From contig QPMI01000499.1 in assembly GCA_004431415.1 (NCBI GenBank), positions 1-64,000 of the forward strand: 64,000 nt of DNA, given 5' to 3'. Shown here piece by piece: positions 2,187-44,845 of the stretch. Under the pieces are notes generated by a model. That model was not told the DNA's origin. It saw only the letters and a list, made by a program, of their open reading frames with translations, and ran no database searches. Origin of the DNA: Cyanophora paradoxa CCMP329 (Eukaryota; Plantae; Glaucophyta). A program made the translations under genes and the position numbers. Position 1 is the stretch's first letter; each line of letters starts with the position of its first letter.

Positions 2187-2246
2187 ACGAACCCCCGAGC
2201 ACACGAAGCCTGGCCCGGGGGCCTGAAGCCGGCGGGCCGGCCTCAG

Positions 2247-3444: not shown

Positions 3445-3967
3445 CCGCCCCTGACTGCCGGGATCGGACCCTGGACGAGCTCAATGCTTTGAAGCAATTG
3501 CAATTCTTGAGCTCGGTGCGTTTCTTACAGCAACTTATCTTGCGATTCTGCTCTCAATATGCTGTTAGGTGGCGCTCGAGTCGAGACGCTTGCAAAAGTA
3601 ACAACGGGCTGCGCACGACCGCCGGGTCTACATTCAAAGCGAAGTGTTGGGTCGACCGGGTCCTGGAGGTCCTGTTCTCCCCGCGCGCGCTGGGGTCGGT
3701 GGTGTGCAGTGGCCACCACCTGCGCGATCCGACAGCATGCGCACCATTTGTGGTCACGTCCACAGAGTGGTTCCGCGCGCCCCGCGCGGGGCGTCCTGAC
3801 ATCTTCGCGAACGAAGAGCAGGCAAAAGGGCTACTGCAGCGGTGCAAGGCTTTTGTAGGACTGCAGATAGCCTGATTCCGCATGCAGCTATAGTCTAGGG
3901 TTCTACGACATCGTTGGTTTTGTATGAGATCAATTTCACGAGGCCGAACTCTGTACCCTTCGATCGC

Positions 3968-3991
3968 AAGTTAGCCACCGGTGGCTAACTT
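3968..3991. repeat. Perfect 24-bp palindrome AAGTTAGCCACCGGTGGCTAACTT (also 7790-7813, 11584-11607; 192-216 has one extra C)
   Basis: Self-complementary by direct inspection; one copy per array unit. Confidence 0.95.
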
Positions 3992-4789
3992 AGGGGGGAA
4001 TGAACAGGGGGAGAAGCGCAGGGGGGAAGAATAGGAAAAAAAAGGAACTTCCGCGCGCCCGGCCATGCATGCAGCGCGCGAATTCCGTCCGCTGCGCATG
4101 CGCACTGCCGCGCGCACGCCGTGCTCAGCCCCGCGGCGCCACGCCCGCCCCGCAGGCGTCTTCGCCGCGCCCGCGCACGCGAGGAGTACACATCGCTTGC
4201 TTCATCGGCTCACCCGCGGCGCCGGCGGCGCGCTAGCTACACGCTTTCGCTTGTCCGAGGTACTCATCTTCGAATTCTGCAGCCGTCGCCCCATCCTCGG
4301 CAGCTGTAAGGCGGCGCGCAGGGACTCGAGCTCTCAACTATGGCGTCGCCCGGCGGGCCCAGCGCAAGCAGCTCTGAGCCAGTAGGTCCGTCCCGGAACC
4401 GCCCCTCGGACCTGCCTGGGCGCGCTGTCTTCCGATCCTGCTAAAAAACGTGTTTTCGGGGCGACATTTTGGCACTATGTTCACTATGCCCGCCGGCCAT
4501 GGGCTCGGATCGGGCCGGGGCCTTTTTCAAGCGATCGCCGGCGCCGCGTCCGTCGTCCGACGGTTCGCGCTAGCGATCTCCCCGGAGTACTCGGTACCAG
4601 GGCCTAGCGATCGCCGAAGCGATGAGAAGGCTCTCTGACCGGCGATCGCTTGCGCAGGAGCTGCTTCAAGTTCGTCGCACCAGCCAACGCCAACGCCTGC
4701 AGTGCGTGCCCGCCTCCCGTAGCGCTGTGGGCATGCTCGCATAGAGATTCTCTATTCAATGCGATCGCTACATCTCTGCCCCGCGCATA

Positions 4790-7700
4790 GAGCCTTCTCA
4801 TTGCTCGGCGATCGCTTTGTGTTCGGCGCCATACCCAGCGGATCCGATCTCTAACAAAGAGCTGCTGGGCCGGCGATCGCTTCTGTGTTCTCAGTTCTAA
4901 CGGTCGCCGCGGGCTTGACGTCCACAGCCTTCTCATTGGCCAAGCGATCGCTGGTTTTCGGTGTCTTATGCCCGTCTCCGCAGCATGCTGACCCCGGAGA
5001 GAGGAGGCGGACCTCCCTACCCCCCGGAGTGCCCTCTTCGGGGGGGAAGAGAGGACGTGGACCTCCTTCCCCTCTCCCAGCCCCTCTTCGGAGGGCCCCG
5101 CCCCCGCCCTTCCGCCTCCCCCCGGCCCCGCCCCTCCCCCGGCCCCGCCCCTCTCCCCAGCCCCGCCTCTCCCCCCGGCCCCGCCCCTCCCCCCGGCCCC
5201 GCCCCGGGCCCCGGGCGCGCCCCTCCCCCCGGCCCCGCCCCGGGCCCCGGGCCCGCCCCTCCCCCTGGCCCCGCCCCTCCCCCCGGCCCTGCCCCGGGCC
5301 CCGGGCCCGCCCCTCCCCCGAGCACCCGCAGCATGCTGACCCCCGGAGAGAGGAGGCGGACCTCCCTACCCCCCGGAGTGCCCTCTTCGGGGGGGAAGAG
5401 AGGACGTGGACCTCCTTCCCCTCTCCCAGCCCCTCTTCGGAGGGCCCCGCCCCCGCCCTTCCGCCTCCCCCCGGCCCCGCCCCTCCCCCCGGCCCCGCCC
5501 CTCTCCCCAGCCCCGCCTCTCCCCCCCGGCCCCGCCCCTCCCCCCGGCCCCGCCCCGGGCCCGGGCGCGCCCCTCCCCCGGCCCCGCCCCGGGCCCCGGG
5601 CCCGCCCCTCCCCCTGGCCCCGCCCCTCCCCCCGGCCCTGCCCCGGGCCCCGGGCCCGCCCCTCCCCGAGCACCCGCAGCATGCTGACCCCCGGAGAGAG
5701 GAGGCGGACCTCCCTACCCCCCGGAGTGCCCTCTTCGGGGGGAAGAGAGGACGTGGACCTCCTTCCCCTCTCCCAGCCCCTCTTCGGAGGGCCCCGCCCC
5801 CGCCCTCCCGCCTCCCCCGGCCCCGCCCCTCCCCCCGGCCCCGCCCCTCTCCCCAGCCCCGCCTCTCCCCCCCGGCCCCGCCCCGGGCCCCGGGCGCGCC
5901 CCTCCCCCCGGCCCCGCCCCGGGCCCCGGGCCCGCCCCTCCCCCTGGCCCCGCCCCTCCCCCCGGCCCTGCCCCGGGCCCCGGGCCCGCCCCTCCCCCGA
6001 GCACACGAACCCCCGAGCACACGAAGCCTGGCCCGGGGGCCTGAAGCCGGCGGGCCGGCCTCAGATCTACAAGTACAGCGGCGAGCTGGACGCGGCGACC
6101 GAGCTCCTCGACCGCGCCCTCTACTGCCTCGAGGCAGCCTGGTGCGGGGCGGGGCGCGGGCACGGGCGCGGCGGGGCGGAGGATGCGTTGCGCTGCAGTT
6201 CGTTCACTTGGTTTTGAGCTCCGTCCCCGGCAGGCACCCGCAGTTCAAGCCGGCGAGCGGCGCCTGCCGCCTCGACTTCGCAGTCATGGAGAACAAGTGC
6301 GCAGAGAACCCGTTGTACCCCCGAGGATAACCTGTACCCTCCTCCGGACTCACCCCGCCACCCCCCAGGGCCTGGTCTTCCGGCGCCTGCAGATGCTCAT
6401 TCGCGGCGGCTGCTCCCGCACCTCCCTCGGTACCCCCTCGACCGCTTCCCCCCTACTCGGATTCGAACCGAACGTCGTACCTCCAGAGACGGCCAAGCTG
6501 CTGCTTGCGCTGGACCCCGACAGTGACCTGATGGGGGTGCTCCAGTGCATCGACTACTTCGCCCTCCGCGCCAGGTACCCCATAACCTTCCCCCCCCCCC
6601 CAACTTCCCCCCCCCCCACCTCATTTTTCTTCAGGGAGTACAAGTTCCTTCTGGAGCTGGTGGCGGCGCCGGCGCTCCCCGGGCGCTCCGCCTCGTTCGT
6701 GCGGGAGCCGCCCCTCTCGAGGCGGGAGCCGCCCCTCTTCCTCCCCATCGCCCTCAACTCCTCGGGTACCCCCACTTAGCCTCTCCCCCCTTTTTTCCTG
6801 GCGCCGAGCCGGGCTCGCAGCGTACGCGCTCATGCGCGTGGCGCGGGACGGCGGCGCCGCGCCCGTCGACGAGCTGGTGCCCTGCGCCCCTCCGAATCTC
6901 CTCTAAGACTGAAGCGCGGCAGGTCCTCCGGCGCCTCTTCTCGCACACGCTGGACCCCGCCTCGCCGGCGCCGCCCACGCCCTCTGCCGCGGCCCTCGCC
7001 GCCGCCCTCCTGCGGCAGGCGGTCCTCATGTACCCCGGCGCCGTCCGCCCCCTCCTCGAGAACTACAACGTCAAGCCCGACTCCGGGGTGCGGGGGAGGG
7101 GCGGGACTCCGACAAGGCGAGCGTCTTTCCTCTGAGCTTCTTTACTTTCCGAGTCCTGAGCGGCTCTCTCCTTTGCTTCTTCGTTCACAGGGCGCCAGGG
7201 GCTGGGCCGCCCTACACAGGCGGCCCCTCTTCGACGACGACGAGCCGGCCGCCAGCGTCGAGCTCCCGCCCCTGACTGCCGGGATCGGACCCTGGACGAG
7301 CTCAATGCTTTGAAGCAATTGCAATTCTTGAGCTCGGTGCGTTTCTTACAGCAACTTATCTTGCGATTCTGCTCTCAATATGCTGTTAGGTGGCGCTCGA
7401 GTCGAGACGCTTGCAAAAGTAACAACGGGCTGCGCACGACCGCCGGGTCTACATTCAAAGCGAAGTGTTGGGTCGACCGGGTCCTGGAGGTCCTGTTCTC
7501 CCCGCGCGCGCTGGGGTCGGGTGGTGTGCAGTGGCCACCACCTGCGCGATCCGACAGCATGCGCACCATTTGTGGTCACGTCCACAGAGTGGTTCCGCGC
7601 GCCCCGCGCGGGGCGTCCTGACATCTTCGCGAACGAAGAGCAGGCAAAAGGGCTACTGCAGCGGTGCAAGGCTTTTGTAGGACTGCAGATAGCCTGATTC

Positions 7701-8455
7701 CGCATGCAGCTATAGTCTAGGGTTCTACGACATCGTTGGTTTTGTATGAGATCAATTTCACGAGGCCGAACTCTGTACCCTTCGATCGCAAGTTAGCCAC
7801 CGGTGGCTAACTTAGGGGGGAATGAACAGGGGGGAGAAGCGCAGGGGGGAAGAATAGGAAAAAAAAGGAACTTCCGCGCGCCCGGCCATGCATGCAGCGC
7901 GCGAATTCCGTCCGCTGCGCATGCGCACTGCCGCGCGCACGCCGTGCTCAGCCCCGCGGCGCCACGCCCGCCCCGCAGGCGTCTTCGCCGCGCCCGCGCA
8001 CGCGAGGAGTACACATCGCTTGCTTCATCGGCTCACCCGCGGCGCCGGCGGCGCGCTAGCTACACGCTTTCGCTTGTCCGAGGTACTCATCTTCGAATTC
8101 TGCAGCCGTCGCCCCATCCTCGGCAGCTGTAAGGCGGCGCGCAGGGACTCGAGCTCTCAACTATGGCGTCGCCCGGCGGCCCAGCGCAAGCAGCTCTGAG
8201 CCAGTAGGTCCGTCCCGGAACCGCCCCTCGGACCTGCCTGGGCGCGCTGTCTTCCGATCCTGCTAAAAAACGTGTTTTCGGGGCGACATTTTGGCACTAT
8301 GTTCACTATGCCCGCCGGCCATGGGCTCGGATCGGGCCGGGGCCTTTTTCAAGCGATCGCCGGCGCCGCGTCCGTCGTCCGACGGTTCGCGCTAGCGATC
8401 TCCCCGGAGTACTCGGTACCAGGGCCTAGCGATCGCCGAAGCGATGAGAAGGCTC
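4790..8455. mobile_element. Putative non-autonomous TIR element, copy 2
   Basis: Same termini and content as copy 1; separated from its neighbours by a 156-bp spacer. Confidence 0.5.
6065..7265 (+). pseudogene. TCF25: TCF25/Rqc1 fragment, copy 2
   Basis: Near-identical to copy 1. Confidence 0.85.
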
Positions 8456-8611
8456 TCTGACCGGCGATCGCTTGCGCAGGAGCTGCTTCAAGTTCGTCGC
8501 ACCAGCCAACGCCAACGCCTGCAGTGCGTGCCCGCCTCCCGTAGCGCTGTGGGCATGCTCGCATAGAGATTCTCTATTCAATGCGATCGCTACATCTCTG
8601 CCCCGCGCATA

Positions 8612-11600
8612 GAGCCTTCTCATTGCTCGGCGATCGCTTTGTGTTCGGCGCCATACCCAGCGGATCCGATCTCTAACAAAGAGCTGCTGGGCCGGCGATC
8701 GCTTCTGTGTTCTCAGTTCTAACGGTCGCCGCGGGCTTGACGTCCACAGCCTTCTCATTGGCCAAGCGATCGCTGGTTTTCGGTGTCTTATGCCCGTCTC
8801 CGCAGCATGCTGACCCCCGGAGAGAGGAGGCGGACCTCCCTACCCCCCGGAGTGCCCTCTTCGGGGGGGAAGAGAGGACGTGGACCTCCTTCCCCTCTCC
8901 CAGCCCCTCTTCGGAGGGCCCCGCCCCCGCCCTTCCGCCTCCCCCCGGCCCCGCCCCTCCCCCCGGCCCCGCCCCTCTCCCCAGCCCCGCCTCTCCCCCC
9001 GGCCCCGCCCCTCCCCCGGCCCCGCCCGGGCCCCGGGCGCGCCCCTCCCCCGGCCCCGCCCGGGCCCCGGGCCCGCCCCTCCCCTGGCCCCGCCCCTCCC
9101 CCGGCCCTGCCCGGGCCCCGGGCCCGCCCCTCCCCCGAGCACCCGCAGCATGCTGACCCCGGAGAGAGGAGGCGGACCTCCCTACCCCCGGAGTGCCCTC
9201 TTCGGGGGGAAGAGAGGACGTGGACCTCCTTCCCCTCTCCCAGCCCCTCTTCGGAGGGCCCCGCCCCCGCCCTTCCGCCTCCCCCGGCCCCGCCCCTCCC
9301 CCCGGCCCCGCCCCTCTCCCCAGCCCCGCCTCTCCCCCCGGCCCCGCCCCTCCCCCGGCCCCGCCCCGGGCCCGGGCGCGCCCCTCCCCCGGCCCCGCCC
9401 CGGGCCCCGGCCCGCCCCTCCCCTGGCCCCGCCCCTCCCCCGGCCCTGCCCCGGGCCCCGGGCCCGCCCCTCCCCGAGCACCCGCAGCATGCTGACCCCC
9501 GGAGAGAGGAGGCGGACCTCCCTACCCCCGGAGTGCCCTCTTCGGGGGGAAGAGAGGACGTGGACCTCCTTCCCCTCTCCCAGCCCCTCTTCGGAGGGCC
9601 CCGCCCCCGCCCTTCCGCCTCCCCCGGCCCGCCCTCCCCCGGCCCCGCCCTCTCCCCAGCCCCGCCTCTCCCCCCGGCCCCGCCCGGGCCCCGGGCGCGC
9701 CCCTCCCCCGGCCCCGCCCCGGGCCCCGGGCCCGCCCCTCCCCCTGGCCCCGCCCCTCCCCCGGCCCTGCCCGGGCCCCGGGCCCGCCCCTCCCCCGAGC
9801 ACACGAACCCCCGAGCACACGAAGCCTGGCCCGGGGGCCTGAAGCCGGCGGGCCGGCCTCAGATCTACAAGTACAGCGGCGAGCTGGACGCGGCGACCGA
9901 GCTCCTCGACCGCGCCCTCTACTGCCTCGAGGCAGCCTGGTGCGGGGCGGGGCGCGGGCACGGGCGCGGCGGGGCGGAGGATGCGTTGCGCTGCAGTTCG
10001 TTCACTTGGTTTTGAGCTCCGTCCCCGGCAGGCACCCGCAGTTCAAGCCGGCGAGCGGCGCCTGCCGCCTCGACTTCGCAGTCATGGAGAACAAGTGCGC
10101 AGAGAACCCGTTGTACCCCCGAGGATAACCTGTACCCTCCTCCGGACTCACCCCGCCACCCCCAGGGCCTGGTCTTCCGGCGCCTGCAGATGCTCATTCG
10201 CGGCGGCTGCTCCCGCACCTCCCTCGGTACCCCCTCGACCGCTTCCCCCCTACTCGGATTCGAACCGAACGTCGTACCTCCAGAGACGGCCAAGCTGCTG
10301 CTTGCGCTGGACCCCGACAGTGACCTGATGGGGGTGCTCCAGTGCATCGACTACTTCGCCCTCCGCGCCAGGTACCCATAACCTTCCCCCCCCCCCCAAC
10401 TTCCCCCCCCCCACCTCATTTTTCTTCAGGGAGTACAAGTTCCTTCTGGAGCTGGTGGCGGCGCCGGCGCTCCCGGGCGCTCCGCCTCGTTCGTGCGGGA
10501 GCCGCCCCTCTCGAGGCGGGAGCCGCCCCTCTTCCTCCCCATCGCCCTCAACTCCTCGGGTACCCCCACTTAGCCTCTCCCCCCTTTTTTCCTGGCGCCG
10601 AGCCGGGCTCGCAGCGTACGCGCTCATGCGCGTGGCGCGGGACGGCGGCGCCGCGCCCGTCGACGAGCTGGTGCCCTGCGCCCCTCCGAATCTCCTCTAA
10701 GACTGAAGCGCGGCAGGTCCTCCGGCGCCTCTTCTCGCACACGCTGGACCCCGCCTCGCCGGCGCCGCCCCCGCCCTCTGCCGCGGCCCTCGCCGCCGCC
10801 CTCCTGCGGCAGGCGGTCCTCATGTACCCCGGCGCCGTCCGCCCCCTCCTCGAGAACTACAACGTCAAGCCCGACTCCGGGGTGCGGGGGAGGGGCGGGA
10901 CTCCGACAAGGCGAGCGTCTTTCCTCTGAGCTTCTTTACTTTCCGAGTCCTGAGCGGCTCTCTCCTTTGCTTCTTCGTTCACAGGGCGCCAGGGGCTGGG
11001 CCGCCCTACACAGGCGGCCCCTCTTCGACGACGACGAGCCGGCCGCCAGCGTCGAGCTCCCGCCCCTGACTGCCGGGATCGGACCCTGGACGAGCTCAAT
11101 GCTTTGAAGCAATTGCAATTCTTGAGCTCGGTGCGTTTCTTACAGCAACTTATCTTGCGATTCTGCTCTCAATATGCTGTTAGGTGGCGCTCGAGTCGAG
11201 ACGCTTGCAAAAGTAACAACGGGCTGCGCACGACCGCCGGGTCTACATTCAAAGCGAAGTGTTGGGTCGACCGGGTCCTGGAGGTCCTGTTCTCCCCGCG
11301 CGCGCTGGGGTCGGGTGGTGTGCAGTGGCCACCACCTGCGCGATCCGACAGCATGCGCACCATTTGTGGTCACGTCCACAGAGTGGTTCCGCGCGCCCCG
11401 CGCGGGGCGTCCTGACATCTTCGCGAACGAAGAGCAGGCAAAAGGGCTACTGCAGCGGTGCAAGGCTTTTGTAGGACTGCAGATAGCCTGATTCCGCATG
11501 CAGCTATAGTCTAGGGTTCTACGACATCGTTGGTTTTGTATGAGATCAATTTCACGAGGCCGAACTCTGTACCCTTCGATCGCAAGTTAGCCACCGGTGG

Positions 11601-12247
11601 CTAACTTAGGGGGGAATGAACAGGGGGAGAAGCGCAGGGGGAAGAATAGGAAAAAAAAGGAACTTCCGCGCGCCCGGCCATGCATGCAGCGCGCGAATTC
11701 CGTCCGCTGCGCATGCGCACTGCCGCGCGCACGCCGTGCTCAGCCCCGCGGCGCCACGCCCGCCCGCAGGCGTCTTCGCCGCGCCCGCGCACGCGAGGAG
11801 TACACATCGCTTGCTTCATCGGCTCACCCGCGGCGCCGGCGGCGCGCTAGCTACACGCTTTCGCTTGTCCGAGGTACTCATCTTCGAATTCTGCAGCCGT
11901 CGCCCCATCCTCGGCAGCTGTAAGGCGGCGCGCAGGGACTCGAGCTCTCAACTATGGCGTCGCCCGGCGGGCCCAGCGCAAGCAGCTCTGAGCCAGTAGG
12001 TCCGTCCCGGAACCGCCCCTCGGACCTGCCTGGGCGCGCTGTCTTCCGATCCTGCTAAAAAACGTGTTTTCGGGGCGACATTTTGGCACTATGTTCACTA
12101 TGCCCGCCGGCCATGGGCTCGGATCGGGCCGGGGCCTTTTTCAAGCGATCGCCGGCGCCGCGTCCGTCGTCCGACGGTTCGCGCTAGCGATCTCCCCGGA
12201 GTACTCGGTACCAGGGCCTAGCGATCGCCGAAGCGATGAGAAGGCTC
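8612..12247. mobile_element. Putative non-autonomous TIR element, copy 3
   Basis: Same termini as copy 1. The array ends exactly at the right inverted-repeat arm (GGCTC, 12247). Confidence 0.55.
9863..11059 (+). pseudogene. TCF25: TCF25/Rqc1 fragment, copy 3
   Basis: Near-identical to copy 1. Confidence 0.85.
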
Positions 12248-22886: not shown

Positions 22887-23068
22887 CCGGTACCCCGGCT
22901 AGCCAGATCTAGTCCTAGTAGTAGTAGTCTTGCGAGTCGCGGTCGGCCTGTAATGGAACGCGCGCTGGCCCGTGGCGGAATCTTTATGGATCTTTATGTG
23001 TAGTCCTGTCCCTGCATTCCCGCTACATCCTACACCCCCTACGCTGCCCTGCCCTGCCTGCACCGCTG

Positions 23069-26000
23069 CTACCTCTTCTTGCCCTTGTCGGCGGCCGCGG
23101 CGCCGGCGGCGGGGCCGGCAGTCGAGGCGGAGGGCCCGCCCGCGTGCGGCACGCTCGGGATGGGGTTCAGCTCGAAGACCTGCGGGGGGGAATACACCTC
23201 GCTCAGCTCATCCCGCAGCTTCGAGTTCGAGAACGAGAAGGAAGGGTCCTCGCCTTCATGCGGTGGGAGATGCCCTTCTCGAGGAGCCGGTCGACGGCGT
23301 TCGCCTGCCGCGAGCGGATGATGTTCGTAACGCTCGACGAGATCGCCTCCCGATCCCTCCCCGCCCGCTGCGCGCAGTTCAGGACGGACGGGAGGGCGGA
23401 TGGATGGATGGATGTGTGGATGGAAGGAGGGGAGGAGGAGCATCGCACCTGCGCCCTCGCGGCCGCGCCCGCCACACCGATCCCGCGCGCCTGCGGACGA
23501 AGGCGTCTCCGGAAGGGATTCGAAGCGGGGGGGGGGGGTACGCGTGGCGCGCCTGGGCGAGGTCTCGGGCCGAGAGCTGCGGCTCTGCGTACTCGTCCTC
23601 CTCGGAGTCCGAGGGGTCTTCCCAGGGCTCCGCCGAGTCGCCCCCGGCGCCCTCCAGCCCCCGGCTCGGCAGCCGCACGGACCGCGTGCTCTTCGACCGC
23701 GTCGTCGCCGCCGCCGCCGCCGCCTCCGCCGCGTCGGGGTGCGCCGTCGGCGCCGCCGGCGGCGGGATCAGCTGCCGGACCGTGAGCGCCGGAAGCTACG
23801 GAAGGGGGGTACGGGAGCACGTTGGGTACGGGGTTGGCCCACGTGGAAGGATCGGAAAGGGACCAGTAGGACTGGGGCCGGAACACGCCCACAAAGGCAC
23901 CTGCCCTCCGACGCTCATTTAAACGTCTGATGTTTAGGAGGAGAAGGGGTACCGTTGAGGGTCCACAGGCAGATCGAGCCGTCCACGGATCCCGTGAGGA
24001 GCATTTGGTTCTTGTCCACAAAGTCAAGGCTACCGTACCCCCCCAGGCTTAGAATTCGACGGAGAAGGGGAGGGCGAGTTCAAGGGTACCTGACGAGGGC
24101 CGACTCGTGGGCGCGCCAGTGGTAGAGCTCGACGAACTCGCGCGCGGTACCCCCCTCGGAGGCGGCGGCGGCGGCCGCCGCCGCCGCCTCGCGGGCCTCT
24201 CCGGAGAGCTTCGAGACGTCCCACACCTTTTCCCGATGATCGTCACGGGGGATACGGAAATTCTGCAGGGGGATGAAACGGCGGGGGGTACGGTACCTTG
24301 ACGTGGCCGGCGGCGTCGCCGGTGAAGAGGAACGAGTCGGACTCGTCGGCGCAGAGGGCGACGATCGCCTCGCCCTTCGGGTGGCCCCCGTGCTCCCTGC
24401 GCGAACGAAGTTTGGGGGGGGGAGAAAGGGGGAGGAGAGGCAGGGGGTACAGCGCACGCGACGATCTGGTTTGCGTCGCGGAGGTTCCAGGAGCGCAGTA
24501 CCCCGTCCGCGCCCGCAGAGACAAGCACGCCGTTCGCCCCGCGGCTCTTCAAGAAGACCATCTGGCGGGGGGTTTGAGGGGTACGTGTTTGAGAGAGGTT
24601 GCAAGCGGGGGGTACGCGCCTGCTCGACGGCGCGCTCGTCGGCAGGGATGCGCTCCAGTTCGGGGGCCGCAAGCGAGGCCTTCATGTACCCTAGCAGAGA
24701 AGGGGGGGGGGATGATCAGGACACGGGAGCGGGGTAGGGGAATGCGAGAGAAGAGGGGGTACCCGAATCAAGGTTCCAGACGAGGATTCGGCCGTCGTAG
24801 GAGGCGGTCGCGAGCATGTTCGGGGCGCAGAAGGCCACGCACAGGATGTCCTCCGCGTGCCTGCGGGGGGTACGCCAAAGTGTCTCAGACGGACCGGGGG
24901 GACGATCCGGGAGGGGGTAGGCGACGCGGTGCGGACCCCTCGAGCTCGCGCATGGTGGGGACGTCGTGCGTGTTCTCCTCGAGCCACATGAGCACCTGAC
25001 GAAGGAGCCGATCAGGTCAGGTGAGACTGAACAGACGAGATCAGATGAGATTAAGGACCTTGCGGTCCCAGCCGACGGCGACGATGAACTTGTTCTGGCC
25101 CTCGTCGATGAACCTGAAGGCACGCAGGGCAGGGGCGCCCCGCCCCGGTCGGCCTCGATCTGGCAGGGGCGGGAGGGGCGGCACTTGACGGAGGTGATCT
25201 CGTTCTTGCCCGAGTGCACGAAGTTCTTCAGGCACACGCCGCTCGAGAAGTTGTACATCTGCGAACGAAGAACACTGAGCCCGGGGGGCCACTTGATCTC
25301 AAGTATTCCACTAGAACCCAGCATTAGCAAGCTCAGCTGAGGCCCGGCCCGGCCCAGCAAGAGACTGGACCGAACGCTTCTCTGACCGCTATGCCCCAAG
25401 GTAAGCTAAGCCAAGCCAAGCCAGAGGTCCACTAGGGCGTTGGTTCAAGCAGTCCACCAGAACCCAGCGCTAGCAGGCCCGGCTCAGACCCCGCCCAGCC
25501 CAGCAAGAGTTGGGCCGAACGCTTCTCTCGAGCTAAACTTGTGCCCAACGAGCCCGGCCCAGCCCGTGTCCGCGCGGACCTTGACCTCGCCGTCGTGGAA
25601 GCCGGTGATGAGGCGCCGCCCCGCCGCGTCGAACGCCAGCGACGTGATCCGCTTCTCCTGCCGGCCGCCCCGGCGTCAAGCGGTGGGCGGCGCCCAGCTT
25701 AGGCCCGGCCAGCGGCGGGCGGGAGAGAGAGAGAGAGGGCGAGCGAGCGAGCGCATCTCTCGGCCCGGTCCGACCCGCCCCGCCCCGGATGCCCCGGACG
25801 CGCCCAGCAAGCGGCGGGCGGCGGGCGGGCGGGCGGCGGCCCAAGTGATGGCATCTCTCGCTCCTCGTCCCTCCCGGCCCGGGCCGACCCGCCCCGGATG
25901 CCCCCGGCGGACCTGCTTCTCGTCGACGGAGAAGCGGAAGACGATGTCCCCCGTGTCCAGGTCCCACACGCACACCGCCCCGCTCTCGTCCGCCGACACG

Positions 26001-28752
26001 ATCTGAAGGACAAGAGTCAAGGAGAGTGGGGCGGGGGGCGGGGAGGAGGGGGCGCGCTGGCGCGCTGGCGCGCTGGCGCGCGCGCCTGGTGGAAGGTGTG
26101 GTTGTAGAGGGCGCCGCCGAGGGCCCGCTCGTGGCTCTTCGTCCCGTGCTCGTTCTCGTCCCGCCGCTGCATCGGCAGCACGTGCAGCCGCGTCGTCGCC
26201 GTCACCAGCGACGAGTGCTTGAAGTCGTACCTAAAAATAGGAGGAGTGTTTGTATGAAAGGGGTACGAGAAAGGGGGAGGGGGGGGCGGACAGGCAGGCG
26301 GAGATGCGGTTCTCGGGCCGGTGCTTCTCCTTGTCCACGATTGTCTGAAGGCACCGGTGGTTCCGCACGTCCCACACCTGCCGCTCGCCTCAGGAGGCTG
26401 ATGGGGGAGTGGGGGGGAGGGGAGGGGGTACGCGTGCCTTGATGACCTTGTCGACGGAGAGCGAGATGAGCTGGTTGTGCCAGTCGTTCACGATGACCTG
26501 CTCCCGCCTGGACGTTAGGCCCAAGGGTACGCACAGAAGCTCCGGGGGGTACGGGGTTCTGCGGGCCTCCTGGACGCTGGCGTTGTGTCCGTGGAGCGTC
26601 GCGACGGCCTTGCTCGTGTACGGGTTCCAGAGGACGATGTGCCGCTCCAGCCCGCACGACGCGAAGAACTGCACGGGGGTACGCGTTGAGGCGCGGGAGT
26701 ACAAGCTGAGGGGGGGGGGGGGGGGGGGGGCTGAGGGACCTTGTACGTCCTGCACCAGTCGAAGGAGTAGACGCCCTGCGGGGCACGGCGGCTCGAACAC
26801 AAGATGAGGGGGGGGGGGGGCTTCAGGGGTAGGGTACGGGGCGCGCCTTGGAGTGGCCCTCGAGGGTCACCTTTAGCTGCTTCTTCTCCACGTCTCCGAC
26901 CTGGGGATACGGCGATCAGAAAGAAACAGAGGAGGGGTACAAGTTTTTAGGATGGGGATACCTTGATTGTGTTGTCCAGGGAGCTGGAGACGAGGGACGC
27001 CATCTCCGGCACGTACCGGACCTGCCGGGGGGTACGCGGTTCGGAGGGCGTCGGGGTACACGGCAGGGGGGAGGGTGGAGGAAGGAAAAGGAACGGGGCC
27101 CGCCTTTGTGACCCAATCCTTGTGCGTCTTTTGCTGCGAGCGGGGGTAAGGGAAGGTCGGACGGGGGTACGGGTACGGCTCGCCTTGAAGAGCTTGGTGC
27201 CCTCGAGGACCCCGTCGTACATGTGGTACACGTGCAGGTACCTGCCGCGCCGCCCCGGTCGTGAGCTGCGCCCCGCACGACGTACCCCACTGAGGACGGA
27301 TCCGCGTACCCCGCGTCGTCTCCGAACGCGAGCATGTCGCGCTCCTTCGCGGGCCAGTACCCCAGGCAGAGCGGCGCGTTGTCCAGGTCGCTGTGCGCCG
27401 GGCGGATAGGATCAGCGCGCAGCGGGCGGGAGGGAGGGTACAGCGCGCGTAGTTCGCACCGGATGCGGCCGACGCATTCCATCGAAGCGGCGTCGTAGAA
27501 CGAAATGGAGCGGTCTGGCGCAAGAAGTGCTTGAGCGGGGTACGACAGAGAGCGGGGGGGTACGAGGCTCGCCGATGGAGGCGACGGCGAGCTTGTTGCA
27601 GAGGGTCATATGAGCGCAGTCGGTGATCCAGGAGGGGCCCTTGGCCTGCGGGTCGTTGGGCCGCGTCGGCGGGTCGTTCCGCACGGTCTTCATGTGCGCC
27701 AGCGTCGTGGCGTTCCAGATCCGCAGCGTCCCGTCCCGGCTGCCCTCGGCTCAGCTCGGCTAAGCTAAGCACGGCTGAGCCGCGCTCGGCCGCGCCCCGC
27801 TAAGCACCTCGTCGTGATGTACTTGTCGGAGTTGGGGAGGAAGAGGACCCGGTCGATCATGTCCTGCAGGGCAGGGGCGCAAGTCAGCTTCTGTCCGGGG
27901 AGCCAAAGCCATCCTATCCTTCTTCTATCCTAAGATACCTTGTGGTAGACGCCGTCGGCGCCCCCGTCGCCCTCGTCGGTCTCCACGTACTCGTTCTGGA
28001 GAGGGGCGGGGAGGGGCGGGGCGGGGCGGGGCGGCCTGAGCGCGCGGGCGGGCGCGGGGGATCAAATCATATGCGCACGTTGACGCCCTCACGGAGGGTG
28101 GCGGTGCCCTGCGACTCGAGGAGCATGAAAGTGGAGAACTCGTCCCAGTCGACGCCGCCGTCGCTGTTCGCGTCGATCTTCATGAAGAGGTGCTGCAGCT
28201 GCTCCGGCGTCATGTTCTTCCCTATCACGCCCCCGAACGCCTCGATGAACTGCGCACGCACGCACGCGGCGGCGCGCCTCAGCGGGGCGTGCGTGCGGGG
28301 AGAGAGAGGGCGCTCGGGCCGGCGGCGGGCGGGCGGGCGGGCGGGCCTCCTCCATGTCGAGCGAGCCGCCGCCGTCCACGTCCGCGCGGTCGAAGATCTC
28401 CTTCAGCTCCATGAGCGTGCTCAGGTTGATGGCGTCCTCCGAGTCGTTGCCCGTGTCCCTGCGTGCCCCGCGCTCGTGGGTTGCCGTTGCCGTGCGGGCC
28501 CAGGCGCAGCGATAGACGGAGCAGAGGACAGCAGAGGTTCTTGTGCTTACCCGGGCTTCTTTCTCCTCGCGCCGCCGCTCGACGTGGTCGCGCGCCCTGT
28601 CGGCGCAGCCGCAGCGGCCGCCGCATCGCCCTCGGGGTTGAGAGCGGTCTGTAGACGGCAGAGGTCAGATGAGAAGCACCACCTTAGCTCGGGCGAGGGC
28701 CTGGGCGCCCTACGAGGCTGAGCGGGTTCAGTTTTGAGCGCACCAGCGGCAT
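23069..28752 (-). CDS. EF-hand + WD40 repeat protein (WDR49/WDY/EFCAB8-like)
   Basis: Two EF-hands (FDRADVDGGGSLDMEE, FMKIDANSDGGVDWDEF) followed by many WD repeats (SRDGTLRIWN, SLDNTIKVGD, SVDKVIKVWD, ADESGAVCVWD, SYDGRILVWN, GADGVLRSWN). Start codon approximate. Confidence 0.88.
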
Positions 28753-29352
28753 TCGGCTAGGGCCGGCGGAAGATTAGCTGACGCTCACTACGGGGCTGCG
28801 TGCTCAATCTGAAGCTGCTAGCTAAAGCTTTCGAATCAGCTGCAGGAAGTTGTGCTGGTCGAGGCGCTGTACCCCAGGCCACCGGACTTGCGCTGATCGA
28901 CTCCAGATCTGAGTGCCACCGCACGCGTGGCTGTGTGACAGCCCCGCGCGTGCGGGCCCCAACGCACGACCCCCCTCACGAGCTGACACCATCAAAAGAC
29001 GAACTCGACTGTTCTCAATTCGATGAAACAAGAAAACTGCCTCTGCGCAATTGAAACCTGCAGCTGAAAGAAAACTACGGAAAACCTGAGCTACCTACCC
29101 CAGCCCCCAGACTCCAAACTAAGAGTCGGCCAAAACTCAGCTGACTCTCACAAGCCCCCTGAGCGCAGGACGAGCCGAACGGGGGGGCGCACTGCCGCCT
29201 CGCAGGGCGAGGGGTGGGGCTCTAACGACATGAAAAGACGGGCAACTGCATAGAGATCCTACCGACTTGCGGCCGTATAAAAAAGGAATAGACCTCGGGC
29301 TGGCGGGCGGAAAGGAGAGGAGAGGAAGGAAAGGGTTCGAGGTAGGAGGCGG

Positions 29353-31164
29353 CTACAGCTCGTAGAACATGGCGGAGACGGAGCTGCCTTCGTGGACGCG
29401 CAGGATGGTCTCGCCCAGGAGCGGCGCCACGGAGAGGACCTTCAGCTGCTCGAAGCGCTTCTCCTCGGGCATCGGGATGGTGTTCGTCACTGCGCAGGGA
29501 AGGAGATCCAAGGTGAGAAAGGAAGGGGGAAAGGAAGGTAGAGCAGAGGAGGAGGCGAGGCGCACCGATGACCTCCTCGAAGCAGCCGGAGGAGAGGCGC
29601 TCGGTGGCGGGAGGGGAGAAGACGGCGTGCGTGGCGCAGGCGTAGACCTCCTTGGCGCCGCGGGAGCGCAGGAAGTTGGCCGCGTTGCAGATGGTGCCCG
29701 CCGTGTCGATCATGTCGTCGACGAGGACGCACGTCTTGCCCTGCACCTCCCCGATGAGGTTCACCACCTCGCACTGGTTCGGCGCCGGCCGCCGCTTGTC
29801 CACGATGGCGAGCTGGAGCCCGCCGAGCTCCTTGGCGAAGGCGCGCGCGCGGGCGACGCCGCCGATGTCGGGAGAGACGACCACAAGGTTGTTGCCGAGG
29901 TTCTTGCCGCGCAGGTAGTCGAGGAGCACGGGGCTCGCGTACACGTGGTCCAGCGGGATGTCGAAGTAGCCCTGCGTCTGGAGCGAGTGGAGGTCCATAG
30001 CCACGACGCGGTCCACGCCCGAGGCCGTCAGCAGGTTCGCCACCAGCTTCGCCGTGATCGACTCGCGCGCCTGCGACGCCTTGTCCGCCGGCAGCAGCTT
30101 GTCCGCGCTGCACGCCGCGTGCACGTGAGCCACGGCGCGGGACGGGACGGCCGGGCGGGAGGAGGGGGCGCCCGCGACGAACCGGGAATAGCCGAAGTAG
30201 GGGATGACGGCAGTGATCTTGGCAGCCGACGCGCGGCGTGCGGCGTCAATCATAATCATAAGCTCCATCACGCGATCGTTGACGGGGCAGCAGGTCGGCT
30301 GCGCGCGGGGGCGGGCCCAACGTCGGTGACGGGTCGCGTGCCCGGCCAACGTGACGCGCGGCGGCGGCGGTCAGCTCACCTGGATGATGAAGACGTCGCA
30401 ACCGCGCACGGACTCGTCAATGCGGACGTAGCACTCGCCGTCTGTCGAGCAAGGGACAAGCCAAGTAAGCACAGCGAAGAGCCGTCAAGCCTGGCGGCCG
30501 GGCCTGGGCCCACCGGCGAAGCGCTTGTGCTGACACCTTCCGAGAGACGTCCCCATGTAGTTGGCGGTCTCCTCGGCGAGGGCTGGGTTGCCCTGTGCAC
30601 GGGATCAGTGGCGAGCGCGACGAACTCGAGTTCGGGCCCCCGGGGGTTGCGGGCGGTGGATCCCTTATACGATAGAGAAAGAAGAAACACGTGGAATAGG
30701 GGTGAGCAGCTCACCGGCCCCGAAAAAATCTTAAGGCGGGCTGCATCAACGATCTGGGGGACTGGCAGAGGGGCGGGCCGGGGAGCGAGATCCTCGTCCT
30801 CGAGGAGCGTTGAACGAGCAACGGGGAAGAGAGTGCGGGAGCGGGGAAAGCGCGGGGTGAAGACGGGGTCCGTCACGCTCGGGGCGGCTTCGGCGGAGGC
30901 TGGGTGGCTAAGCGGCTGGGAGCTCTCTGAAGTCGGAGTGGGGCGCAGAGAACGATCTCGCCCAAGGAAGACGCGCTCGCTGCTGTTGAAAAACTTGCGT
31001 TGCCGGATCGTGTCCCGGGGGCGGCTGCTCTCGGCCGCGATCGCCGACGGTACGCTATGGGTAACTCCGACCTTCTCTGCTGGCGCGACCGCCGCGGCGC
31101 TGCGCGGGGACGAAACTCCGACCCGCGCACACGCCGCCGAAACAACAGCCGCCGAGAAGGCCAT
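29353..31164 (-). CDS. PRS: Ribose-phosphate pyrophosphokinase (class I), probably plastid-targeted
   Basis: [74 protein letters not shown]-terminal Ser/Ala/Arg-rich extension starting MAFSAAVV. Confidence 0.96.
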
Positions 31165-31445
31165 TTCAGGCAACCCGAGTGATTCCTGACGCTGGCACAG
31201 CCTTTGCCGCCTGTCGGCGTGAACAGACAAGCACAGCTGAAACTCTGGCACACTGTACCCCGTCAAGCAACCGCTGCGCCGAAAAGAGCGCCTCGAGGCT
31301 CGCGCCGAACCAGCAGCAGCCCAGCCTGTTGCTCTGCGATTCAGCGCGAAGAAGAAGAAGAAGCTGTTCGACGCGACCTGCAGGCTGCAGCCGCTAGTGC
31401 ACGAGCGACGAATCGAATCGAATAGGCGACGCACGAACGGGGAGT

Positions 31446-38312: not shown

Positions 38313-39856
38313 CTACCGGGACAGGGGCGCGCGGTGGACGTCCTTGTAAATGATGTACCGGGAGCGGCTCTGCGGGGCCCGGGCGCTCAGGGGTACGGAG
38401 ATAATGAGAGGAACGTTCAGGAGGGTGCTGGGGTACCTTGCCGAGGGCGGCGTACCACTGGGGAACGTACGGCCCCATCCAGATGACGTCGCCCGCCGTC
38501 ACGGGGTACCAGTCGTCTCCTAGACTGGAGGGGTACGCGTCGGCGTCGGCGACAAAGGGGGGTAGCTCAAAAGCTCGAAGCGCAGCGAAGGGGGGGTACC
38601 GATAGATGCCCTCGCCCTCGAGGAGGAGGAGGCCGTGCTCGTGGTAGTGTACCTCCTTGATCGCCAGGTACTCCCCCGGCTGCGGGGGGTACGCGTTCGG
38701 TTGGTTGGGGGGTACGCCTCCAGCGGCAGGTTCGGGGATAGAGGTACGAACGTTGAAATCCATGACGTGGACGTTGAAATCGTACGCCGGCTCGACGGGG
38801 AGCAGCTTCCGTAGGATGAAGTACTCCCCTGGGGGCAGAAAAGACTCGACGTCGGACGGGTACGGGATAGAGCGCGGATGCGATGAATGTTAATGTACCC
38901 GGGACGACCTTGCCCTCGAAGTCGCGCTCGTGGCCGACGATGACGCGCGGGTTGCCGCCGGGCAGCGGCGCGTGCGTCCGCTCGTACACGAGGACCTGTA
39001 CCCCCCCGGCCGTTCCGTTTCAGGTCGGAGAGCCCCGCAAAGGGGGTACGTGTACGCGCGCGGACCGAGGCGACGCCCTCGGCGGCGAGGTTAAAATTAG
39101 AGTCCGGGGGGAGGTAGCAGAAGGCGCCCGGGCCCTCCAGCCTCGTCTGGTTCTGCGTTCCGGCCTGAAGGAGGGGGCGCGGCGGGCGGGGCGTCAGCTT
39201 CTCGAGGTCAGGCGCTCCGTGCTCGGCGGGTCGGAGCCTCGGGGCGACCTTGAAGAGGCTACCCCCGGAGGAGAAAGAGAGGGCCAGAGAGCCGCTGAGG
39301 ACGTACACGAAGCGCTCGGCGCCGGCCGGCATCCAGTTCGTGTACCCGCCGTCCTCCAGCGTCGCCACGTACATCAGGAACTGCGCGCCCATCGCTGCGG
39401 GCGCGAAGGTCAGCCGGGGCGGAGCGGCGGCGTTTCAGCGGGCGCGGGCATGCACCGGGGGAGATGTACACCACCGCCGACGTCTTGGTCCAGCCCGGAA
39501 GCGGGGCGCCGACGCGGCTCTCGGGCGTAACGAGCGCGTAGTCCCTACTGGGGCCGTCGGCAGCACGCGGCGGGGCGGGCGGCCCGCGCCTGGCCGGCGG
39601 CGGCGCGCGCACCGGCGGACGACGCTACGGGTGTAGCCGGGCAGCGCCGTGATGGGACGCGGCACGTGCGTGATGTGGGAGGTCAGCGGGTCATAGTTCG
39701 CAGCCTGGCCGAACGCTTCGTGGCCCGGATAGGCAGTCTCTGCCCGCGGCGTTAGGCGGCCGGCCGCTGCGGCAGGAGCGCCGGAAACGCACCCGCGTTG
39801 GCCGAGGCCGAAAGAACTAGCACGGCGGACAGGAGGAGCCCGAGCAACCGCTCCAT
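38313..39856 (-). CDS. UGLYAH: (S)-ureidoglycine aminohydrolase (AllE/YlbA bicupin) with signal peptide
   Basis: Signal [123 protein letters not shown]. Confidence 0.95.
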
Positions 39857-41541: not shown

Positions 41542-44500
41542 TCACCAGATCCAGCGGGCGGCGTGCGGGCCGCGGGTGCCGAGCTCCAAGCGGAAAGTGA
41601 CGCGGCGTCCGCCGCGCAGGGCGACAATCTGCACGCGGTCCCGCCACGCGTGCGCGTACAGCTGCCGGAAGGTTCGAATTTGAATTTGAATTCGAATTCG
41701 AATTCGAATTTGAATTCGATCGCACCGCGCGGCCGAGGTCCAGGCGCCCGCGGATTTCGGTCCCGTCGAACACGATGACGCGGTCCTGCGGCCGCAGCCC
41801 GCCCTCGAACGCGGCCGAGCCCTCCAGGACCTGAAAAGGGGGGTACGCGGTTCGGCGGGGGGTACGGACGGGGGAGGGGGGTGGGGGCGCACGTTACGGA
41901 TCGGGGCGCCGGGCGCGCGCGTCTCGTCGTGGTCTGCGGGGAAGGCGTGCGCTCAAAACGGTGCCGACGGGTACGCAAAAGGCGAAAACGCGTACCCGGG
42001 TCGACGGTGACGCCGAGGAACGGGTCGGAGAGCTTCTGGCGCCGCGTGAACACGTCCACGAGGCGCACGACCTGCGGGGGTACGTCAGCGTCGACGGCGT
42101 CCTCCGGGGGTACGCGAACGCGGAGGGAGGGGTACGCGCCTCGTCGGCGGAGAGAGCGAGGGAGACCTGGGAGAGGCTGGAGGGCCAGGTCTGGTGGGAC
42201 CCGAGCCCGGAGCGGATCGCGCTCTCCCGCTGCGAACGAAACGCTTGGGGGAGGGGGTACGAGGGGATGGAAGGGGAGGGGGTACCGAGATGCCGATGTG
42301 GTTGACGCCGACGACCTCGCCCCGCGAGTTGACGAGGGGCCCGCCTGAGTGAGGAGGGGGGCGAGGGGGTTAGGAGGGCGGAGGCACGGAGAGAGGGGGG
42401 CACGGCGCAGCGCGCTAGGCGAGCGCAGAGAGGCGGGAATCGGAGCTCCCACTCTAGTCGCCCCTCGAGCCGAGTCCCGGAGCGCGAATCGAAGCGCACC
42501 GGAATAGCCGCCCCTCTAGCCGCCCGTTCCCCTCTAGCCGCCCTCTAGCCGTCCCTAGCCGCCCCTCTAGCCGCACCGGAGTAGCCGCGCAGGATCGGCG
42601 CGTCGGTCGCCAGCACGCTCGCAGAGTGGCCCAGCCACATCTGGGGAGGGAGGGAAGCAGCGTTAGACGAAGGCGGAGGGTTCGTGGGCTGCTGCTGGGT
42701 TCGAGCGCGGGCCCGGGGCTAAATATAGCGCACCGTGTACCCGGGGAGGTTCGAGAGGACCATGCCCGAGCAGACCTGTGCACGCGCGCGGCTCGGCTCA
42801 ACTCGGCTCGGCTCGACGCTCAGCGAATTCGGTGGTGGTTTTCATTCTAGATCTCAGGAGCGATCGGATTCTATTCCCCCGGGGGTCTCCTGGCGACCCC
42901 GGCATCCCCCTTGCTCAACTACTGAGTTGGGATAGCTTCTAAACGTGGGAGCAGGCCTCCGAATGCATTGCGCATTGCGCGGGCCTCAGAATGTAAATGA
43001 GAGCGGAATGTATGGATGTGAGAGCGCACCGAGTTGGTGATGTCCTCGCGGTCGGGGTGCCGCACGGCGAAGACGCGGCGCGGGTCCGCCGTCCGCGCGA
43101 ACTCACTGCGGGGAGAGGGGTGAGGGGGAGGACGGGGAGGAGGGGGAGGAGGGCGGACGTGAAGGCCGAGCCCAGGCGGTCGTCCGAGTAGGACTCCGAG
43201 GGGAGGACGCCCTGCCGGAGATTCGAATTCGATCCGGGAGGAAGCGGAGATCGATCAAGGGGGGCCGCGGGGCCGGGGGGGTACCTTGCCGAGGAGGCGT
43301 GCGACGGGTACGGCGTCGGTGGCGGGCGGCGGGCTGGTCCCGATGCGGGCCGACTCCACCCAGGCCTGGCGGCGTGGAAGATAGTTAAAGGCAGAGGCAG
43401 AGGCCTGGGCCTAGGGTCGGGGGAGTCGGCGTAGGGGGTACCGGGAGGCGGCCGCCGGGGGTACAGGCGCGCAGGACGGCGAGGTCGCGCGCCGCGTCGG
43501 TGCCGATGATGCGGCAGGGCACCCGCACGCCCTGCGGCCCGCGGTCGGCGAGGGGCGGGTCAGAGACTCAGGGCGGGTAGCAGCTGTCGAAAACGAGGGG
43601 ACCTGGGTGTGGATGACGACCGTGCCGCCGGGCCCGGCGGCGGCCGCGACCACGTGCTGGCACGTCACGTCATCAGTTTCGACGGGTAAGACGCGAGCGC
43701 GCCGCAGCTCACCTGGCACGTCACCACGATGCCCCGCGCCCGGTCGTAGACCCACCTGCGCGCGGCTCGGCTCAGCTCAGCCGCCCCAGCCGGCTGGCCG
43801 GCCTGACTGTGCCCGGCCGCCCCACAAGGCTTCGCCGAGCGCACCCGGTGCCGGTGGACGAGGCGCCCTTGGAGCGTGAGCCCTTGGGGGCCTTGGCGGC
43901 GGCCGTGACCGTCACGACGGAGCGGAGGAGGCGCTCGGCGGCGCGCCGGTCCGCGATGCCGGCGCGCAGGAGGTCGTCCACGACCCGCCGCTCCTCCGCC
44001 GTCGCCCGCGGCTGCTCGAATCGGCTCAGATCAGATCTGATATGAGGTGACGCGATCAGATCCGATCGTACCTGGGGGTTCAGGGCGTCGAGCGCGAGGA
44101 TGAGGGTCATCGCCCAGAGAACGTTCATCTCGATGGTCGCGAGGACGCTCGGGTTCGTCTCGCGCGAGAGGAGGTACCCGGCGAGGCCCGAGGCCACGGC
44201 GGCGAGGCCCGAGGCCGTGCGGTTCGAGAAGGAGGACGAGGAGCCGCCCCCGGCCTCGCCCAGGGCCGAGCGGAGCTGCCAGACCACCGCGAAGAGCGCC
44301 AGGGACTCCAGCACGAGAGCGAGGCCGTGCCCCTCCGGCAGCGCGAGCCGCGCGATCCCCGCCACCTGCTCCGCCGCCGCCGCCGCCGCCGCGAGGGAAA
44401 GGGACGCCACAAGGGGAGCGCTCAGCGGGAGAACGTTGACCGCGGCCGGCGCCGGCGCCGGCACCGGCATTCTGCGGGGCGCGCGGAAGCTTTGGTCCGA

Positions 44501-44845
44501 GGCGTGGGGAACGAAAGATGGTGGGAGAACACACCTCGCCGGTGCCGCTCCGAAGAAGGCGCGGCGCTGACGGAGAAGGAGACCTCCGCTGGCGGCGGCG
44601 CCGCAGCGAATGCGGGTCGGCGTCGCGGCGGGCCGCACGGTCCGCATGCTCCAGCCCGCGGTGGCGGAAGGAATCATTGCAGCACGGCAGCCGATCGCCG
44701 GCGCCACCGCAAAAAGGGCTCGCCGCGCCGCGCCGGTGGTGGCGCCGGCGGCCGCCGTCGCACCCATCCACGGAGCGGACGCGGGGGCGTCAGGAAGCGC
44801 TGCGTAAAAGATCAGTGATTGTCTGCCACGCGTAGCGGCGATCAT
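41542..44845 (-). CDS. DegP/HtrA-like serine protease with PDZ domain and N-terminal hydrophobic extension
   Basis: TCQHVV (His), GTDAARDLAVL (Asp), LATDAPILRGYSGGPLVNSRGEVVGVN (Ser); PDZ PFLGVTV..GSAAFEGGLRPQDRVIVFDG. Start uncertain (several ATGs between about 44677 and 44845). Confidence 0.85.
41676..41717. repeat. (GAATTY)n hexamer microsatellite filling the last intron of the protease gene
   Basis: GAATTTGAATTTGAATTCGAATTCGAATTCGAATTTGAATTC lies between a GT donor and a CAG acceptor on the minus strand. Confidence 0.9.

Follow-up and report, generated by a model that had tools for sequence, protein, structure and literature searches.

What makes the tetranucleotide GTAC crowd into some gene bodies of the glaucophyte Cyanophora paradoxa and leaves adjacent DNA bare? 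The question arises at positions 23500–27600 of a 64,000-nt stretch of C. paradoxa CCMP329 DNA (contig QPMI01000499.1, positions 1–64,000; hereafter, the window). This region spans the 5' part of one minus-strand gene (gene A) and most of another (gene B), and holds 43 GTAC, 28 of them intronic. A first-pass annotation, made from the sequence alone, had described GTAC-rich gene-body domains here. Our analysis points to the word GTACCCC as, probably, an RNA-level, splice-site-proximal recognition element of short C-rich introns.

GTAC patches and the intronic word

The GC content of the window is 67.8%, and the total of 299 GTAC corresponds to one per 214 nt. From base composition, about one per 338 nt would be expected; relative to an order-2 Markov model, GTAC is over-represented 1.49-fold across the whole window. 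The hand counts of the first-pass annotation were reproduced exactly: 25 GTAC in 26221–27600 (1 per 55 nt), none in 25261–26220, and four in 28021–31260. Two further patches named there were also borne out, with 21 GTAC in 38350–39060 and 9 in 41840–42290. At the window-wide rate, 6.45 sites would be expected in 26221–27600 (Poisson P=2e-8) and 3.3 in 38350–39060 (P=7e-11); the GTAC-poor gaps show a mild to clear deficit (P=0.011 and 8e-4). In bins of 500 nt, the counts are more dispersed than a Poisson process would give (variance/mean 2.4). They correlate with the number of short introns per bin (r=0.43, p=3e-7), and no correlation with total intron bases was found.

The intron set comprised 13 RNA-confirmed, 16 curated, and 164 predicted introns. 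Spliced RNA was represented by runs sharing only ~36% of the words of 23000–28900, and contigs were available from two studies. These contigs skip segments of 52–81 nt with the plus-strand ends CT..AC, that is, GT..AG introns of minus-strand genes, and one skip has the ends CT..GC, that is, a GC donor. For the 13 skips, all shifts giving the same spliced product were enumerated, and exactly one was canonical in each case. The minus-strand genes are thus seen in the RNA contigs to be cut by many introns of 50–80 nt. The long-read assembly of C. paradoxa is 67.6% GC; its genes have on average 9.2 introns, the mean length of which is 86 bp, and the genome paper called gene prediction problematic (PMC6704402).

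Predicted introns came from a gene parser with codon and intron content models, GT/GC–AG ends, and open frames; positions 23000–25600 were excluded from its training. A preceding motif-blind parser, which merged genes and recovered 8 of the 13 confirmed introns, was dropped. The content-model parser tends to choose GTAC as the donor even when the RNA points to a GC further upstream and, because of this preference, predicted donors were not used as evidence for a GTAC donor. One copy of a 3.8-kb repeated unit at the start of the window was kept for the tests and the repeats were removed.

The claim that most sites are intronic holds for 17 of the 25 GTAC in 26221–27600, 12 of the 21 in 38350–39060, and all 9 in 41840–42290, the introns of the last two patches being predicted. 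Exons contribute 8 of 25 and 9 of 21 sites to the first two patches. Exonic GTAC is mostly of one kind: in 67 of 82 sites, the tyrosine codon TAC follows a G-ending codon (NNG|TAC). Together, these exonic tyrosine codons and an intronic word on the sense strand make up the patches. They are real, but the 1–2 kb domain code proposed for them is better read as downstream gene bodies dense in short C-rich introns, with exonic tyrosine codons added. GTAC is patchy because such introns are dense in the gene body beyond ~500–750 nt from the start; the word GTACCCC is missing where exons or atypical introns are long, and it is scarce in the initial introns of a gene. An RNA-confirmed intron of 321 nt (25259–25579) fills the first 320 nt of the GTAC-free interval 25261–26220, and the remainder consists, in our own parse, of a second long intron and exon sequence. 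The GTAC-poor interval 28021–31260 includes the 5' part of gene B and a PRPP synthetase gene with long exons.

Sense GTACCC reaches a density of 5.1/kb in introns (n=93) versus 0.69/kb in exons (n=16), a 7-fold difference, and antisense GTACCC in introns amounts to 1.0/kb (n=18). Between genes, 30 copies in 22.6 kb lie in both orientations (~0.66/kb per orientation). The intronic ratio of 93 sense to 18 antisense copies (binomial p=2e-13) places the C-run on the RNA strand in 93/111 cases. Short introns hold 92 copies of GTACCC where an order-1 composition model of introns predicts 3.7, an excess of ~25-fold, and this is their most over-represented hexamer, an artefactual G-run aside. The word was found in 8/12 RNA-confirmed, 10/15 curated, and 54/148 predicted short introns.

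The commonest GTAC-containing 8-mer is GTACCCCC/GGGGGTAC; the patches read GGGGGTAC on the plus strand, so the C-run is on the minus strand. The C-run that had been noticed on the sense strand was confirmed in the aligned sites, where C occupies 95, 80, 64, and 49% of the positions following GTACC, giving 3–6 C in total. The base before GTAC is C in 64% of sites and never A, so that the form can be written [C/G/T]GTACCCC, or B-GTAC-C(3-6). Word-bearing introns fold less than the others (−0.18 versus −0.32 kcal/nt). The word is mostly unpaired in these weakly folded introns, with only 30% of its bases paired, as expected for a binding site. A hairpin or zipper role of the word was rejected, given this unpaired state and folding z-scores of about −0.3. 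Second to the GTAC word among the words of short introns are the palindrome TTCGAA and its relatives ATTCGA and TCGAAT, over-represented 11–15-fold; a tandem (TTCGAA)n array lies at 41673–41719.

Placement within introns and along genes

The word keeps to introns and to one strand and is found close to splice sites; in some cases it is itself the donor that is cleaved, and in many it follows shortly after a weak donor. Among the 13 RNA-confirmed introns, four begin exactly with GTACC, and three carry GTACCCC at +4, +7, or +11, with the donors GCGCGT, GTGCGC, and GCGCGC, respectively. In two, the word is located 12 or 23 nt before the acceptor, in one it is antisense near the 3' end, and five have none. 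A fourteenth intron, 27515–27572, has an RNA-supported GC donor and the word at +9. In the RNA-confirmed and curated set, 14 of 24 word sites lie 0–14 nt from the donor, against 25% expected if they were uniformly spread (p=6e-4), and 20 of the 24 copies are not at the junction. A second cluster, with forms such as GCGTACCCCCGCAG, occurs 8–16 nt before the acceptor and is present in RNA-confirmed introns too.

An association with GC donors, raised as a possibility in the first-pass annotation, is suggested by the data: the word stands at +4 to +14 after 7/10 GC donors versus 1/12 GT donors other than GTAC (p=0.006), although this remains suggestive because six of the GC donors are curated. For RNA-supported donors alone, the corresponding numbers are 3/4 GC and 1/6 GT. 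GTACCC is also the second commonest predicted donor hexamer, after GTGCGC. Other donors keep the exon-final AG and a G at +5 (G[T/C]NNGC), which is a poor fit to canonical U1, and GTACCC lacks the +5 G. Across 23180–28078, GC donors were observed in 10 of 27 short RNA-confirmed or curated introns, with the consensus AG|GCNNGC, and the GT donors there are mostly GTGCGC or GTCCGC.

The word is also unevenly distributed along genes. Its reported scarcity near 5' ends was upheld: the first four introns of all genes include 10 that bear the word, whereas permutation within genes predicts 19.4 (p=1.5e-4). Per intron, the rate is 0.07–0.18 within 500 nt of the predicted start and 0.7–0.9 beyond 750 nt. 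Word counts per intron, listed 5' to 3' for individual genes, run 00000111012111111200, 000210221112110.., 00011322, and 00000110L0L23120 (L, long intron). The 5' depletion holds among introns with the best splice signals (p=0.02), early and late predicted introns having equally good signals, and also within the middle GC-skew class, where 7/38 early and 21/43 late introns carry the word. Gene A is an exception, since its first introns bear the word; its 5' end abuts, and seemingly overlaps, the 3' end of gene B.

Base composition changes in the same direction. In the predicted genes of 12265–55133, introns shift along the gene from a GC skew of −0.07 to one of −0.43, i.e., towards C over G on the sense strand, and a step in this skew was observed at ~750 nt from the gene start. 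The gradient may reflect transcription-linked mutational asymmetry or a change of intron type.

Competing explanations and known systems

The first-pass annotation had left three readings side by side: a DNA modification with its mutational footprint, a chromatin signal, and an intronic splicing element. The last of these is favoured, given that the word is intron-specific, keeps to the sense strand, and is placed relative to RNA-confirmed splice sites; a CpG-decay footprint was not supported. We propose that the word would be read in pre-mRNA by a factor that helps to define the 5' end of short C-rich introns. In some introns, the GU of the word itself is the cleaved donor. In others, a weak donor, in many cases a GC of the AG|GCNNGC type, precedes the word by 4–14 nt, and the word would help the factor to mark the intron 5' end. 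Copies located 8–16 nt before the acceptor, in the position of the pyrimidine tract, possibly define the 3' end too. Candidate readers are a KH-type C-run-binding protein or another small nuclear RNA (snRNA).

Several points weigh against the splicing-element reading. All statistics come from one 64-kb window of C. paradoxa nuclear DNA. RNA-supported introns number 14, the other ~180 being curated or predicted, and most introns outside 23000–28400 are our own predictions and not RNA-confirmed. The content-model parser recovered 10 of the 13 confirmed introns exactly when these were held out, and its predicted donors are often off by an in-frame shift. The word is lacking in 4/12 RNA-confirmed and 94/148 predicted short introns; since one third to two thirds of short introns do without it, it is not required for splicing. 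The GC skew of codon third positions also falls along genes, from −0.04 to −0.22, more weakly than that of introns, and because these positions show the same gradient, the C-run and the polarity may partly stem from mutation or composition and not from selection. Internal C|GUACCCC would pair with the 5' end of canonical U1 at only three positions; therefore, the word is not an ordinary U1 site, and a reader other than ordinary U1 pairing is likely. A scan of the window with Rfam gave no snRNA match and no U1 gene.

The parallel gradients of introns and codon third positions are what a neutral origin would predict. Transcription-linked mutational asymmetry would make downstream gene bodies C-rich, and GTAC with its C-run would spread by slippage or duplication without any function; some copies are indeed tandem doublets 5–6 nt apart, e.g., GTACCGTACCCC and GTACCCGTACCCCC. 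We regard this as rather unlikely, however, since composition cannot yield a 25-fold excess of one hexamer. It also leaves unexplained why copies gather in the first 15 nt and the last 8–16 nt of introns and why A never precedes the G, and the 5' depletion persists within the middle skew class. The exact cleavage at GTACC in 4/13 RNA-confirmed introns, together with the high rank of GTACCC among predicted donor hexamers, would fit a second class of 5' splice site, the internal copies then being donors that are unused, alternative, or in decay. Several of these copies lie in frame with the donor in use, at distances of 9 and 6 nt, and could take its place. Yet 20/24 copies are off the junction, with offsets of 4, 7, 11, and 14 nt that are out of frame, and the copies 8–16 nt ahead of the acceptor stand where a donor would be meaningless; on balance, this explanation appears quite improbable.

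The palindrome GTAC is known as the core of methyltransferase and SBP-domain sites, and its adenine is methylated by the chlorovirus enzyme M.CviQI. The word could, in principle, be a DNA-level signal, either the target or footprint of a base modification, including CpG decay, or a chromatin or transcription-factor site of the GTAC-core SBP type. In the C. paradoxa methylome, CG methylation marks transposons and silent genes, with some accumulation towards the ends of expressed genes (PMC12344493), and the latter resembles the 3' polarity of the word. But the flank of the palindrome follows the RNA strand in 93/111 intronic copies, which is hard to square with a pure DNA-level site, and the word is scarce in exons and intergenic DNA and has preferred positions with respect to splice sites. 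We therefore give a DNA-level signal very little credence. The proposed decay of GCGC to GTAC found no support either: CpG observed/expected is 1.0–1.15 in every intron class, and word-bearing introns, with values of 1.05 for CpG, 0.77 for TpG, and 0.67 for CpA, show no rise in TpG or CpA. The intermediates are not in excess, GTGC being present at 4.8 per kb in word-bearing introns versus 9.2 per kb in others and GCAC being low in both (3.4 versus 2.2 per kb), and TpA is not obtainable from one CpG in a single deamination step. Least credible of all is the view that word-bearing introns are copies of a mobile introner with the word as its conserved end. Introners are known in other GC-rich algae, and the word recurs at both ends of some introns. 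Nevertheless, in an all-against-all comparison 173 introns shared only low-complexity matches of 15–24 nt and formed no full-length families; inverted ends were absent, and GGGTAC is rare in introns. Within the window, the introner reading is largely refuted.

The closest known relatives of the putative element are intronic splicing enhancers by weak 5' splice sites. These include the G-triplets of short GC-rich vertebrate introns, U-rich TIA-1 sites, and C-rich alphaCP/PCBP tracts (PMC4797308). Like them, GTACCCC is short, resides on the sense strand just after the donor or in the pyrimidine-tract position, is found in short GC-rich introns with weak donors, and is predicted to be single-stranded. 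It differs from them in being a fixed heptamer with an invariant GUAC core and not a loose run, in occurring in ~40–65% of introns, in sometimes supplying the cleaved GU, and in being depleted in first introns. With U2-type GT–AG/GC–AG 5' splice sites it shares cleavage at the G of GTACC in 4/13 RNA-confirmed introns, the exon usually ending in G; it is unlike them in that GTACC has no +5 G and pairs with canonical U1 at +1 to +3 only, and most copies are off the junction. Introners of Micromonas, Aureococcus, and others resemble the present case in that an abundant recognisable sequence occurs in many introns of a GC-rich alga, but here only a word of 7–9 nt is shared, without families, terminal repeats, or target duplications.

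The comparison with U12-type introns is more involved. GTACCCC resembles the U12-type 5' splice site RTATCCTT in being GTA followed by a pyrimidine run, and its copies inside introns could act in the manner of the U11-binding enhancer of repeated U12-type donor-like words. It has, however, C in place of the conserved T at +4, a junction offset varying from 0 to 14 nt or more, no need of a U12-type branch site, and a frequency far too high for minor introns. Assignment of the word-bearing introns to the U12 type, which calls for RTATCCTT at +1 and a branch site TCCTTAAC 10–15 nt from the acceptor, was rejected on the basis of the C at +4 and the variable offset. In C. paradoxa, 77 minor introns were reported and U11 was the only minor snRNA found, which suggested a transformed machinery (Larue and Roy, PMC10639083). 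The link of the word to U11 is a low-probability lead. In its fullest form, which we consider distinctly unlikely, GUACCCC would be read by a dedicated particle, e.g., an orphan U11-like snRNA, that marks the 5' ends of short C-rich introns and rescues weak GC donors. This would take place only beyond ~500–750 nt into the gene, perhaps coupled to a state of the elongating RNA polymerase, and promoter-proximal introns would follow a different architecture, more folded and not C-rich.

One intron of gene B, 26901–26961, starts with GTATCCCC and ends with CCGTATCCCCAG; its start resembles a U12-type donor (GTATCCTT), and the intron may belong to the small minor-type set that has been reported for C. 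paradoxa.

No description of the word GTACCCC was found in the searchable literature, including the C. paradoxa genome and methylome papers, older subscription papers on Cyanophora introns being outside this search. Among glaucophytes, C. paradoxa serves as the reference; its genes contain ~9 short introns each, many of which have a GC start, and its donors fit U1 poorly. A heptamer marking about half of its introns would give a handle on how its spliceosome finds introns, and would also improve gene prediction in this organism. The 5'-to-3' polarity of intron type and C-richness is a separate lead on links of transcription to splicing or mutation.

Genes A and B and other features of the window

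Gene A (23000–24224, minus strand) is represented by an RNA contig of 1619 nt and extends below 23000. Its RNA-confirmed introns, established by spliced contigs from two studies, are located at 23180–23253, 23368–23448, 23491–23552, 23901–23952, and 24030–24089. The last two begin exactly with GTACCC, and 23491–23552 combines a GC donor with GTACCCC at +11.

Gene B (24164–28412, minus strand; RNA contig of ~2340 nt) encodes an EF-hand and WD-repeat-like protein. The EF-hand corresponds to a Pfam match of exon 28079–28249. The WD-repeat label is a putative one, taken solely from the sequence pattern of the translated exons, and exon 27574–27738 gave no match in Pfam. The RNA contig of gene B seems to end in the first-exon region of gene A, at 24164–24224, and the depths of the two contigs are 11.9 and 67.7; therefore, the genes are arranged in tandem, and their transcripts overlap or abut. 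The structure of gene B was obtained from a sum-constrained parse and the ends of RNA pieces, with correction by hand. The sum-constrained parse failed on 25580–26085 and shifted the RNA-confirmed donor at 25579. Read 5' to 3', the copies of the word per intron are 000210221112110LL0011212, where L again stands for a long intron.

Spliced contigs confirm five word-bearing introns of gene B within 24227–24936, all on the minus strand. Intron 24227–24296 starts with GTACCGTACCCC, and 24691–24762 starts with GTACCCC. In 24397–24457, the donor GTGCGC is followed by GTAC at +7; in 24562–24619, the donor GCGCGT is followed by GTAC at +4, and a second copy lies 23 nt before the acceptor. Intron 24861–24936 has GTACCCCCGCAG at its 3' end. 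The word is absent from the RNA-confirmed minus-strand introns 24996–25058 and 25114–25184 and from the atypical 321-nt intron 25259–25579. The latter and a second long intron, 25658–25942, are G-rich and abound in GGGCTGGGC and GCTTAGC-like words. Two copies of an internal direct repeat of ~130 nt are present in 25259–25579, and both long introns may hold small inserted elements.

The GTAC-rich patch of gene B, 26229–27572 (minus strand), consists of 624 nt of exon and 720 nt of intron in 11 introns of 50–82 nt. The exon total was fixed by RNA contig coordinates, and the parse was constrained to this total and then corrected by hand, guided by the WD-repeat pattern and by an RNA piece that ends at 27573. 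Nine of the 11 introns have GTACC in one or two copies, and another one, 27242–27309, starts with GTACGC. The fourteenth RNA-supported intron, 27515–27572, belongs to this patch: adjacent to the RNA piece 27573–27739, it has the GC donor GCGAGC and, besides the copy at +9, GTACCCC at +29. A motif-blind parse had wrongly put its donor on GTAC, an in-frame alternative. Further upstream, the minus-strand introns 27740–27807, 27864–27938, and 27996–28078, derived from flanking RNA pieces, a 113-nt exon total, and the constrained parse, have no word and are not C-rich. At 26418–26423, in an intronic run rich in G and A, a GG insertion and two swapped letters set a DNA contig from 2012 apart from the window; the intron is rich in homopolymers, and the difference is probably one of assembly or length.

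The PRPP synthetase gene (29353–31164, minus strand) has long exons and few introns, and its open frame 29222–30346 gave a Pfam match. Its best database match is the EukProt protein tig00020909_g15327.t1, the exons of which map at 31164–29356 with 100% identity. The name of this protein has the form used in the long-read assembly of C. paradoxa, which identifies the window as nuclear DNA of this species.

The GTAC-rich interval 38350–39060 corresponds to the last five introns (38370–39059, minus strand) of the gene at 38313–39856, which are known as predicted introns only and have 1–3 GTAC each. One copy is typically placed at the donor or close to it, and another, in the form GTACCCC(N)CAG, at the 3' end; the exons between them contribute NNG|TAC tyrosine codons. 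The first three predicted introns of this gene (39395–39792) have no GTAC. The product had been labelled UGlyAH in the first-pass annotation; Pfam gave no match for the two exons tried, and the label was not confirmed. All nine GTAC of the patch at 41840–42290 (minus strand) lie in predicted introns of the gene at 41542–44677.

The first part of the window, 1–12247, is made up of ~3.2 copies of a 3.8-kb unit with 98.8% identity, which includes a TCF25-like exon (weak Pfam match). The three copies of this unit have too few differences to gauge conservation of the word. Each unit contains sub-repeats of 330–350 nt with 92–96% identity (about 1198–2189, 4978–6007, and 8800–9805). Close to the other end of the window, two direct repeats of 211 nt (58989–59199 and 61078–61287) are 99% identical and lie 2.1 kb apart, which fits the recent long terminal repeat element that had been noted there.

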